64,000 nucleotides of DNA from the NCBI GenBank assembly GCA_004431415.1, contig QPMI01000432.1, positions 310,001 to 374,000 of the forward strand, read 5' to 3'. A program made the position numbers and the translations under genes. This stretch comes from Cyanophora paradoxa CCMP329. Lineage: Eukaryota > Plantae > Glaucophyta. Positions 4,285-6,875 of the stretch are shown piece after piece (positions within the stretch are counted from its first letter, which is position 1; every line of letters starts with the position of its first letter). The notes under the pieces are model-generated. The model worked only from the letters and a program-made list of their open reading frames with translations, had not been told where the DNA came from and ran no database searches.

Positions 4285-4611
4285 TCACTTCTCGATCTTG
4301 TCCTTCGGCATCACGGTGCAGCCGCGGCCGCACGTCCGCTTGCACATTGGCAGATTCATCTCGGTGCAGAGGAGCTTGCAGGCGTCCGAGCACGCCTTCT
4401 CGGGGTCTGGATCGCACGCGTAGAAGCACTTCTTATCGGAGTTCTCGTCGGAGTGGAGGATGATCAGCTGGGGGACCAGCCGAGTCAAGAAGAGAGAGCG
4501 CGGCGGCTCGAAGCACACGCCGACGCAGGCTTGCTTCTTCGCGGGCGCGCCGGAACGCTTGCCCTCGTCTTTGCCGCCGGGCTGCAGCTGGCGAGCTGCT
4601 TTGTTGCCCAT
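4285..4611 (-). CDS. Small Cys-rich hypothetical protein with N-terminal MG (possible myristoylation); 3' end uncertain
   Basis: MGNKAARQ... start, then CFYACDPDPEKACSDACKLLCTEMNLPMCKRTCGRGC; probable intron ending CCCCCAG near 4470; head-to-head with the next gene. Confidence 0.45.
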   Translation of the reverse strand: MGNKAARQLQPGGKDEGKRSGAPAKKQACVGVCFEPPRSLFLTRLVPQLIILHSDENSDKKCFYACDPDPEKACSDACKLLCTEMNLPMCKRTCGRGCTVMPKDKIEK

Positions 4612-4783
4612 CTGTTGCCGGGCTGATTTCGGCGCGAGGGCGCGGGACGCCCCCGAAGCGACTGCGATCCTAGCTGCTAGCTCCTACGAAGCCGCCGACG
4701 CGATGCCGCCGCCGCCCGCTAAGCGATCGCAGACGAGGTTGTTTTTTTCTGGCGGGGTAGCGGGAGTTCAGAAGCTGGTCGCC

Positions 4784-6875
4784 ATGAGCAGCATCAATGG
4801 TCGCGTTCCCGCACCCAGTGAGATGCGTAGCTTCTTTCGGAGCTGACGCGACGCGTGTGCAGGCGGCTACCTTGACATCTATCCTGCTGGCTGGGGCCTC
4901 CTGAAGGAGCGGTGCGACCTGCATGATGCGCACGACGCCGATCGCAGCTACAGCTCTCGCTCGCAGGCCGCCGTCCCCAAGTTCCCGCGGCAGTCAATCG
5001 AATGAGCCCGGATTCGTCTATCTCTCGGAAAGGTTGATTCGCGACCACAGTCTCAGGGCTGGCGACTTCGTCGAGGGTGCCTTCGCAGCTGCGCCACGCC
5101 CTGCATCGTCCGCTGAGCGTCCAGCGCAGGTCCCGTCGAGGCACCGCGTGCGCAAGGGTCCAAGCGCTCGCGGCCAGAGGTGGGCTGCGCCTCCCGTCAG
5201 GCGGCCCGCCGCCCCCGCCCGCTTCGCTAAGCACCCTGGGCGCCCCTCCCTGGCAGATGGTCTCGATCATCCGCGTGAACGCGAGGCCAGTGGACGAGAA
5301 GGGCGACAGGGATCGCGACCGGGACCGCGGCGACAGAGACCGCTCACCGAGGCGGCCGCGCACGCCGCCGCGGCCGTCGGAGCGGGCGGCCGCCGTGCCG
5401 GTTCCCGTCATGCCGGCGATGCCCTACGTGCCGACCGCCTCGGGCGTGATTCGCCTCGGCGGCCGCGCGACGCATTCGATCCTTGACGTGAGCGCTATCC
5501 CCTAAGCCTAGCTCTTCCACCCGCTCGGCCTGTCTGACTCGCCAGCCGTCCGGCAGCAACGCATGAACGGCGGACCGGGTGCGACGCCGGCTGCCCAGCC
5601 GCCGCCGCGGCTCCGCGCGAGCTGAAGCGGGCGCAGATCTGTACGTACCCCCGCAGCTGGTCGAGCGGTACAGGCTCCGGGACCGCGATGACGTGAAGGG
5701 CGCCATGGGGCCCTCCGTACCCCCATTCAAGGCCCGCCCGCCCGCCCCCGGCCGCCCCGCACGCGCCTCTGCTGATCTCTCCCTCAGATGCCGTCCCTGC
5801 TCGATGTCTTCGAGGTGAACGGGCGCCCAGTGCAGCCGGCGGCCGTCGCCGCCGCCGCCGCCCTGCCCCTCATGTACCCGCTCGCCGCCGCCGTACCCCT
5901 CATGGCGGCCGCCGCTGCGGGGATCCCCGCGATGCCGATGGGCCGGGGCCGCTCGCCCCCGCCCCCGAGGAACCGGTCCCCACCGCGGCCGCGCTCCCGC
6001 TCCCGCTCCCGCTCCAACTCGGTGGACCCCCCGAACCGGGTCATGCCCCCCGCCAAAGTCGACCCGCCTGTCCGCCTCGACTGCGGCCGCCTGCGCCTGC
6101 CCGACGCCTCCGGACCGGCGCGCCCGCCCCGCCCCGCCCCGCCCCGGCGCCAGCTGAGCGGGGCGCGCGCAGGGGCGGCTGGAGGGGACGTGCGGGCGGA
6201 ACGAGGTGACCGTGCCGGCGGAGCTGGTGAAGGAGTTCCGCCTGCGGGATGGCGACTTCGTGGAGGGTCCGTACCCCTCGGCCCGCCGTCCTCCTCGCAA
6301 GGTAGCCGGCCGGCTGACGAGGCGCCAGGGACGTGCGTGGGCCACGGGGACGACTCGAACGTGCTGGTGGAGGTCTACTCGATCAACTGCGGCAAGCGCC
6401 GCGCCGCGCGGGACAAGGAGCGGGCGGCCCTCGTCCGCGCCGGATTCGACCCCGACGCCCGCCCCGAGGCGAGCATCGCATTCTTCCGTACCCCCGCGCA
6501 GGCCAGCGCGCGCTGATGCCCCCTCGGCAGGCATCGGCGGCGGCGCGGGAGAAGGAGAAGGAGCGCGAGGGGCGGCGGGAGCGGCGCTCGGAGGGCCGGG
6601 ACGCCGGGGCGGGCAAGGAGGAGAAGAAGAAGTCGGAATCGGAGAAGGGGGAGGGGGAGGCGAAGGAGGCGCCGGCGCACTCGTCGGGGGTCAAGTCGGT
6701 GGTCGTCGTCGTCTCGAAGGAGGCGGAGGGGGAGGCCCCCGCGCAGGGCGCGCGCCGCCCCGCCACGCCGCCCCGCGACCGGCCCCGCACCCCGCCGCGG
6801 CCCGCCCGGCCCCGCACGCCCCCGCGGCCTTCCTCGGCCGCCGACGGGCCCGACTCGAAGCGCCAGCGCAGCTAG
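4784..6875 (+). CDS. Protein with three tandem Rho-factor-like RNA-binding OB domains and RS/RP-rich linkers, multi-exon
   Basis: Spliced repeats GYLDIYPAGWGLLK...FVYLSERLIRDHSLRAGDFVEG...MVSIIRVNARP; GVIRLGG...GGPDLYVPPQLVERYRLRDRDDVKG...LLDVFEVNGRP; EVTVPAELVKEFRLRDGDFVEG...VLVEVYSINCG align by eye to the Rho RNA-binding domain (GVLEILxDGFGFLR...[25 protein letters not shown]...LLKVNEVN). Confidence 0.75.

Follow-up and report, generated by a model that had tools for sequence, protein, structure and literature searches.

Why does a spliced gene of the glaucophyte Cyanophora paradoxa encode repeated copies of the RNA-binding module of bacterial Rho, and what could such a protein do? The gene, which is intron-rich and has many exons, lies on the plus strand between positions 4784 and 6875 of a 64-kb stretch of DNA of this alga (the window, i.e. 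the whole stretch that was analysed). The initial annotation had described its product as an SR-like protein with three homologous units that follow the pattern of the Rho RNA-binding OB (oligonucleotide/oligosaccharide-binding) domain. We found that a nuclear gene of Cyanophora paradoxa encodes this protein, designated P0001, and that its three units are, as judged from sequence profiles and predicted models, Rho-type RNA-binding OB folds and not generic cold-shock domain (CSD), S1 or RNase II folds. The public annotation contains the gene without a name, under the automatic Pfam label PF07497.

Assignment of the three units to the Rho RNA-binding family

Full-length P0001 matched the Pfam family Rho_RNA_bind (PF07497) in three stretches, with 79.7 bits (E = 1.4e-22) for a gathering threshold of 27 bits. 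The best stretch, which corresponds to unit 1, aligned residues 7-86 with positions 3-71 of the 73 positions of the profile. The only other Pfam match was with the related S1CSD-TOTE-2 (25.8 bits), and the full-length scan gave no match with CSD, S1, OB_RNB, the RNA recognition motif (RRM), Rho_N, MazE or an ATPase. An alignment of 16 sequences, including residues 48-125 of E. coli Rho, indicated homology over the whole domain, the units of P0001 being 26-28% identical. Unit 1 shared 37-51% identity with the OB domains of bacterial Rho genes.

The repetition was also apparent at the level of the exons. The cores of the units are encoded by separate exons (4995-5078, 5639-5710 and 6194-6268), which could be aligned with one another and have invariant L, LR, D and V; the pieces encoding the last strand of each unit could be aligned as well. 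Taken singly, each core exon matched positions 23-50 of the Rho_RNA_bind profile (E = 3.6e-5, 0.012 and 0.0035 for units 1, 2 and 3, respectively). A hidden Markov model (HMM) of the three core exons, run on the six-frame translation of the 64-kb window, recovered only these three sites (53-58 bits), the next one scoring 7 bits. When the profile of the three core exons was searched against the PDB, the top twelve distinct sequences were all Rho, aligned on residues 78-101 of the E. coli protein. Single exons gave no match with the PDB in phmmer searches, and the short flanking exons, searched singly, gave none with Pfam. Thus, the proposal of three homologous units was borne out by the cross-alignment of the exons, by their individual profile matches and by the scan of the window.

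We also compared predicted structures. The AlphaFold2 (AF2) model of unit 1, built from a 19-row alignment of units, had a mean predicted local distance difference test (pLDDT) score of 81 and the topology b1-b2-b3-helix-b4-b5. The model of unit 3 (pLDDT 80-95) showed five strands and a helix in the same arrangement. In unit 2, the C-terminal half was modelled with pLDDT values of 84-88 and the N-terminal strands with values below 55. The barrel predicted for units 1 and 3 is a five-stranded OB fold with a short helix between strands 3 and 4, for which Rho is the nearest solved structure. In Foldseek, every match listed to rank 50 was Rho for the model of unit 1, and all were Rho except Teb1 (rank 46) for a model of units 2 and 3. 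VIA, a wide structure search independent of Foldseek, aligned unit 1 with residues 47-125 of E. coli Rho with a Z-score of 12.1 and a root-mean-square deviation of 2.4 Å over 77 residues; two further Rho entries followed (8.7 each), while RNase R, Lin28, RNase II, Unr and CspB scored 6.7 or less. The nearest ESM Atlas clusters were all Rho_RNA_bind, and a feature search of the same atlas was uninformative, its best score being only 0.77. The Rho RNA-binding pattern recognized in the sequence was thus recovered both by Pfam and by the best fold matches, and Rho came out ahead of CSD, S1 and RNase II folds in Pfam, Foldseek and VIA alike.

Parts of Rho that are missing, linkers and tail

The initial annotation had noted that no P-loop or ATPase was present, and our searches agreed with this. 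E. coli Rho, searched by tblastn against the whole 64-kb window, gave a best E-value of 1.0 and no ATPase. In P0001, neither the RecA-type ATPase (Pfam ATP-synt_ab) nor, with E-values up to 0.1, Rho_N (PF07498) was detected. Since it has no ATPase, the protein cannot be a Rho factor and cannot translocate.

The units are separated by disordered, arginine-rich segments of low complexity (Table 1). Linker 1, which carries DRDRDRDRGDRDRSPRRPRTPPRP, is rich in R (11), P (9) and D (7) and contains 6 DR and 4 RD dipeptides; the exon that includes it (5257-5487) gave no Pfam match. Linker 2 contains 6 RS and 3 SR dipeptides, has a net charge of +10 and was modelled by AF2 with a pLDDT of about 50-60. 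The tail (R24, A23, E18, P16, K13; net charge +12) comprises a mixed-charge K/E/R stretch, RPRTPPRP repeats and a terminal DSKRQRS, and matched no family of Pfam or NCBIfam. The tracts that had been described between and after the units, i.e. DRDRDRDRGDRDRSPRRPRTPPRP, RSPPPPRNRSPPRPRSRSRSRS and the RPRTPPRP repeats, the latter in the tail, are therefore present as stated.

The designation SR-like was only partly justified. Arginine-rich tracts do stand beside an RNA-binding module, but the term is a loose one because P0001 lacks an RRM and because its single RS tract is internal and short, about 28 aa (amino acids), the other tracts being of the DR, PR or K/E types. SR proteins are defined by one or more RRMs near the N-terminus and, at the C-terminus, by an RS domain that spans some 50 residues or more and is rich in consecutive RS/SR dipeptides. 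Membership of the SR-protein family was rejected, as we found no N-terminal RRM match and no RS domain of that length.

Gene model

The public model of the protein (EukProt EP00741 Cyanophora paradoxa P012465, tig00020610_g12044.t1, 493 aa) could be placed on the window as 11 segments of exact match, with lengths totalling 1482 nt, i.e. 493 codons plus the stop codon (6873-6875). Splice junctions and expression of the gene are taken from the public annotation. An independent model of the same interval that allows only GT-AG introns had ten exons in frame (1377 nt). Most junctions were common to the two models, including those of a 22-nt mini-exon (5557-5578). The public model differed by another first donor (4800), an earlier acceptor (4966), the additional exon 5130-5179 and three GC-AG introns, starting at 5732, 6118 and 6469. 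Two observations favour the public model. The junction that creates 'SRPEM' before the last strand of unit 1 pairs with 'KPEM' in a paralogue, and segment 6070-6117 encodes strand b1 of unit 3 (VRLDCGRLR), which AlphaFold predicted with a pLDDT of 80-90. This segment is retained only if the GC-AG intron 6118-6172 is spliced, so that the fold model of unit 3 indirectly supports the intron starting at 6118.

The introns, ten in number, are very short, with lengths of 53-77 nt; 3 of them begin with GC rather than GT. They are C-rich on the sense strand (44% C and 31% G; the window as a whole has 35% C). The GC content of the window is about 70% throughout, and that of the gene matches its flanks. 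The gene is genuinely eukaryotic, with its ten short spliceosomal introns, flank-like GC content and membership of a set of three paralogues.

The start of the coding region deserves a comment. Upstream of the start codon at 4784, its frame stays open as far as position 4460 (window positions 4460-4846, plus strand). With a further in-frame ATG, at 4703, P0001 would gain 27 residues (MPPPPAKRSQTRLFF...), which bears on any prediction of targeting. The earlier statement that the protein has no obvious transit peptide accordingly holds for a start at 4784 only and depends on the ATG chosen.

Table 1. Positions in the 64-kb window of the P0001 gene, its exons, the predicted units and the segments between them.
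Feature	Position	Strand	Basis or remark
Whole coding region	4784-6875	+	exact mapping of P0001; GT-AG-only model shares most junctions
Public-model exons	4784-4799, 4863-4911, 4967-5076, 5130-5179, 5257-5487, 5557-5578	+	exact mapping of P0001
Public-model exons, continued	5637-5731, 5788-6117, 6173-6266, 6329-6468, 6531-6875	+	exact mapping of P0001
Unit 1 (residues 5-86), predicted Rho-type OB fold over five exons	4796-5289	+	Pfam, AF2, Foldseek, VIA
Linker 1 (residues 87-133): DR repeat, then RSPRRPRTPPRP, then P/V/A/M-rich	5290-5430	+	composition
Unit 2 (residues 134-206), predicted Rho-type OB fold, N-terminal half degenerate; includes mini-exon 5557-5578	5431-5832	+	Pfam, AF2, collinear with unit 2 of P0003
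Linker 2 (residues 207-282): A/P/M-rich, then RS tract GRGRSPPPPRNRSPPRPRSRSRSRSNS	5833-6060	+	composition, AF2
Unit 3 (residues 283-354), predicted complete Rho-type OB fold	6061-6393	+	Pfam, AF2, Foldseek
C-terminal low-complexity tail (residues 355-493)	6394-6872	+	composition; interrupted by intron 6469-6530
Region upstream of the start codon	4612-4783	.	holds in-frame ATG 4703; borders divergent minus-strand open reading frame 4285-4611 (ORF list)

Paralogues and more distant relatives

Two paralogues were found in Cyanophora, P0002 (722 aa) and P0003 (622 aa), with Rho_RNA_bind scores of 116-129 bits. Each contains three clear units, followed by long Ala/Pro- or Gln-rich regions and by two more diverged units near the C-terminus, five units in total. 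P0001 and P0003 are collinear, unit 1 aligning with unit 1, unit 2 with unit 2 (E = 1e-10) and unit 3 with unit 3, which indicates that the array of three units predates the gene duplications. The genes for P0001 and its two paralogues are on three different contigs of the genome.

Rho-type OB units were also found in a second eukaryotic lineage. In a protein of the dinoflagellate Cladocopium sp. Y103 (P0007, s3075_g4.t1), three such units occur together with an RRM, part of an RsmB/F-type RNA methyltransferase and a long region of low complexity; the gene model is perhaps a fused one. The presence of an RRM and of a methyltransferase fragment in the same chain fits an RNA context for eukaryotic Rho-type units.

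The other relative, P0005, is a metagenomic protein of 1276 aa (L002:6440-10270) that comprises four Rho_N modules and no fewer than four Rho-type OB units and is devoid of an ATPase. In this protein Rho_N modules alternate with OB units, and its bacterial contig resembles a mobile element, with an integrase, a DDE transposase, TraG and ParB. The neighbouring gene (L002:3983-6151) encodes a 723-aa protein with a Rho-type OB unit and a biotin/lipoyl-like domain. This gene pair may be a conflict or anti-termination system made from the RNA-binding parts of Rho. That a bacterial mobile element and a dinoflagellate both have similar arrays devoid of a motor suggests a broader, unexplored pattern.

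Other searches yielded little. Word-based protein searches retrieved the Cyanophora paralogues and, beyond these, just two ordinary bacterial Rho proteins; as they scored only the 8000 candidates with most words in common, an empty result from them carries little weight. One pattern scan of GTDB found nothing; another found seven ordinary Rho genes, of which the two that were checked both had the ATPase. A metagenome scan returned one ordinary Rho and one chance match, and no relative with several units. Word and pattern searches are insensitive in this case, and the lack of further multi-unit relatives in them does not show that such relatives are absent.

Conservation of the RNA-contact residues

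Residues F62, F64, R66 and E108-Y110 of Rho are contacts of the primary site in Rho13N-RNA structures. In the E. coli protein, Y80 contacts nucleic acid, and G51, G53 and Y80 are required for primary-site function (PMC1950744). The equivalent of G53 was found to be retained in units 1 and 3 of P0001 and that of Y80 in units 1 and 2, while F64 corresponded to L, V and R and R66 to K, R and E in units 1, 2 and 3, respectively; in all these comparisons the N-terminal alignment of unit 2 is uncertain. The fold-determining residues (G53, L91, R92, G94, D95 and G99) were largely retained. P0002 and P0003 retained F64 and an aromatic residue at position 80. As contact residues are replaced in P0001 and retained in its paralogues, P0001 is the most diverged of the three.

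The suggestion that P0001 reads the C-rich introns of the genome is consequently weak. Its own introns are C-rich, yet the alignment indicates that the equivalents of F64 have been lost in all three units and that of Y80 in unit 3.

Origin of the module

The initial annotation had left open an endosymbiotic or a horizontal origin of the module. Functional Rho is absent from all 33 Cyanobacteriota that have been surveyed (PMC11347177). Because Cyanobacteriota lack Rho, an origin in the cyanobacterial plastid ancestor is unlikely, and we rejected it as a candidate source. A better guess is that the module was acquired horizontally, either from another bacterium or from a mobile element; it would then derive ultimately from a Rho-bearing bacterium.

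The Rho genes mentioned above, with OB domains 37-51% identical to unit 1, belong to Caldisericota, Clostridia and Daviesbacteria, but a sample selected by motif, as this one was, is uninformative on the donor. The relationships of 29 OB units were not resolved in a maximum-likelihood (ML) tree, the only supported pairs being orthologous units of P0002 and P0003. The units of P0001 were on very long branches (1.35-2.9 changes per column), and those of P0005 and P0007 did not group with the Cyanophora units with support. Such a tree, which was the phylogenetic check that had been proposed, identifies no donor and shows no single origin.

Proposed function and alternatives

The reading that we favour, with moderate confidence, is that P0001 is a 'beads-on-a-string' RNA-binding protein, encoded by a nuclear gene, in which three Rho-type OB units work independently of ATP, and that it is not a terminator. 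By analogy, the most likely mechanism would be ATP-independent, multivalent binding of single-stranded RNA, probably pyrimidine-rich. Each OB unit would provide a weak surface for single strands and, with three of them on flexible linkers, avidity would let the protein hold pyrimidine-rich single-stranded RNA. Charged tracts could add non-specific affinity for RNA, favour partition into ribonucleoprotein (RNP) bodies and possibly allow control by phosphorylation. Acting without ATP, P0001 would resemble heterogeneous nuclear RNPs (hnRNPs) or RNA chaperones, in the nucleus or in the cytoplasm. A nuclear location and a role in RNA processing, which the initial annotation proposed, are suggested by its composition only.

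Several points weigh against this interpretation. The equivalents of the RNA contacts of Rho are poorly retained in P0001 (F64 in none of the three units, Y80 in two of three), and, given the long branches, RNA binding may have been altered or lost. The location is deduced from composition, and the upstream ATG could add 27 residues. Furthermore, fragments of bacterial Rho were among the sequences aligned for AF2, which makes the Rho-like models partly dependent on the sequence evidence.

A more far-reaching proposal, which we consider speculative and rather doubtful as a whole, is that the module with which bacterial Rho recognizes RNA was captured by glaucophytes and also, whether independently or not, by some dinoflagellates. 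Multiplied without the motor, it would have given rise to a class of nucleo-cytoplasmic proteins, specific to eukaryotes, that bind pyrimidine- or C-rich single-stranded RNA, e.g. the C-rich introns of this very GC-rich genome. If true, a Rho-derived OB module at work outside bacteria would be known for the first time.

We weighed several other explanations against an ATP-independent nucleo-cytoplasmic RNA-binding protein. P0001 could be a factor of organellar RNA metabolism, imported into the cyanelle or the mitochondrion, where it would process or stabilise transcripts. The open frame upstream of 4784, with its ATG at 4703, would leave room for 27 additional residues, but P0001 and P0003 as annotated begin directly at strand 1 of unit 1. 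RS, DR and K/E tracts and a basic C-terminus are commoner in nucleo-cytoplasmic proteins. There is a precedent in RHON1, in which a Rho-like RNA-binding module acts with RNase E in chloroplasts (PMC3458557), but RHON1 bears Rho_N and not the OB domain. We consider an organellar function unlikely.

Just as unlikely, in our opinion, is that the ligand is single-stranded DNA, such as C- or pyrimidine-rich strands of telomeres, promoters or R-loops. The primary site of Rho also binds single-stranded DNA (1pv4 is among the matches listed), and tandem OB arrays are typical of proteins with this specificity, of which Teb1, RPA, SSB and PriB appeared lower in the fold lists. The Z-scores of such binders were 5 or lower, however, as compared to 12.1 for Rho. 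The dinoflagellate relative has an RRM and part of an RNA methyltransferase in the same chain as its OB units, and RS-type tracts are commoner in RNA-binding proteins.

Slightly less probable still is that P0001 is a decaying or repurposed paralogue in which the OB fold has been kept and nucleic-acid binding lost, the disordered tracts being the active part or the protein having little function. Its units have the longest branches of the 29-unit tree and are devoid of most of the aromatic and basic residues at the RNA-contact positions of Rho, while P0002 and P0003 retain F64 and an aromatic residue at position 80. Against decay, the reading frame is intact over 11 exons, the fold-determining residues are largely retained and the AF2 models of units 1 and 3 are confident.

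A purely superficial resemblance to Rho, in units that would really belong to generic cold-shock, S1 or AbrB/MazE-like modules, is very improbable. Such modules do share with the Rho-type units a small beta-barrel and a '...LxxGDxV' motif, and single exons matched S1CSD-TOTE-2 (E = 0.0038) and MazE_antitoxin (E = 0.036) weakly. Over the full length of P0001, however, Rho_RNA_bind was far above the TOTE family, with no match at all with CSD, S1 or MazE, and the fold searches ranked Rho well above all other OB folds. A generic CSD or S1 fold was rejected on these grounds. We also rejected a swapped-hairpin SpoVT/AbrB-MazE identity, for which there was a match with one exon and none at full length, the predicted folds being of the OB and not of the AbrB type. 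P0002 and P0003 reached 19-20 bits with CSD (PF00313), below its cut-off of 27. The chance that the gene is a bacterial contaminant or an annotation artefact is negligible: the Rho_RNA_bind domain is otherwise almost entirely bacterial and eukaryotes are stated in a survey to have no Rho homologues (PMC11347177), but ten short GT/GC-AG introns restore a single frame, the GC content of the gene is that of its flanks, three paralogues lie on different contigs of one genome, and low-complexity linkers such as those of P0001 are atypical of bacteria.

Comparison with known systems and significance

By sequence and by predicted fold, the units of P0001 belong to the same family as bacterial Rho's primary RNA-binding domain (PF07497; PDB 1a62 and 2a8v), with which they have in common the motif G.L.I...G.G.L...(Y)V.P..(I)R...LR.GD.V.G.....L..V..VN. 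P0001 departs from bacterial Rho in carrying three OB copies per chain. The Rho_N helix bundle and the RecA ATPase are both missing, nothing points to a hexameric ring, and substitutions affect several RNA-contact residues; the gene is that of a eukaryote, contains introns and encodes low-complexity linkers. Like Arabidopsis RHON1 (PMC3458557), it would be a nuclear-encoded eukaryotic reuse, without the motor, of the N-terminal RNA-binding region of Rho. RHON1, however, has a single helical Rho_N module, is targeted to chloroplasts and is restricted to vascular plants (PMC3458557), whereas P0001 has OB units and no detected Rho_N.

The closest working analogy may be UNR/CSDE1, which also has tandem small OB barrels in one chain and binds single-stranded RNA by avidity. 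The CSDs of Unr appeared in the VIA list for unit 1 with Z-scores of 5-5.7. UNR-type domains belong to Pfam CSD (PF00313) and have RNP1/RNP2 motifs, whereas P0001 has no CSD match and matches Rho best. With SR and SR-like splicing factors, P0001 shares arginine-rich low-complexity tracts (RS, SP, RD/DR) beside an RNA-binding module; it differs from SR proteins by the lack of an RRM and by an RS tract (about 28 aa, six RS dipeptides) well below a classical RS domain. P0005 and P0007 are similar to P0001 in having several Rho-type OB units per chain and no Rho ATPase. They differ from it by the alternation of Rho_N with OB units in the former and by the additional RRM and methyltransferase fragment in the latter.

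A 2024 survey stated that eukaryotes have no Rho homologues and used this in arguing for Rho as a drug target (PMC11347177). Our literature search retrieved no account of eukaryotic proteins with tandem Rho-type OB units and no motor, and among the matches listed, the literature naming the PF07497/InterPro accessions dealt with bacteria only; the earlier remark that no family with this architecture has been described thus stands for the literature searched. The tandem reuse, without the motor, of the RNA-recognition fold of Rho in a eukaryote qualifies the view that Rho is strictly bacterial and does not overturn it. If the predicted domain use is right, the OB module of Rho can serve as a stand-alone building block, without the motor. 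The gene would also exemplify the transfer of a bacterial domain to a eukaryote and its subsequent internal repetition. P0001 offers a candidate RNA-binding protein from a lineage of algae that branches deeply and in which hardly any such proteins have been studied.

Neighbouring open reading frame

The divergent open reading frame that borders the upstream region (4285-4611, minus strand) would encode a Cys-rich protein of 108 aa starting with MGNK, a possible N-myristoylation start. As it is only 172 bp away from the start codon of the P0001 gene, the two may share a bidirectional promoter.

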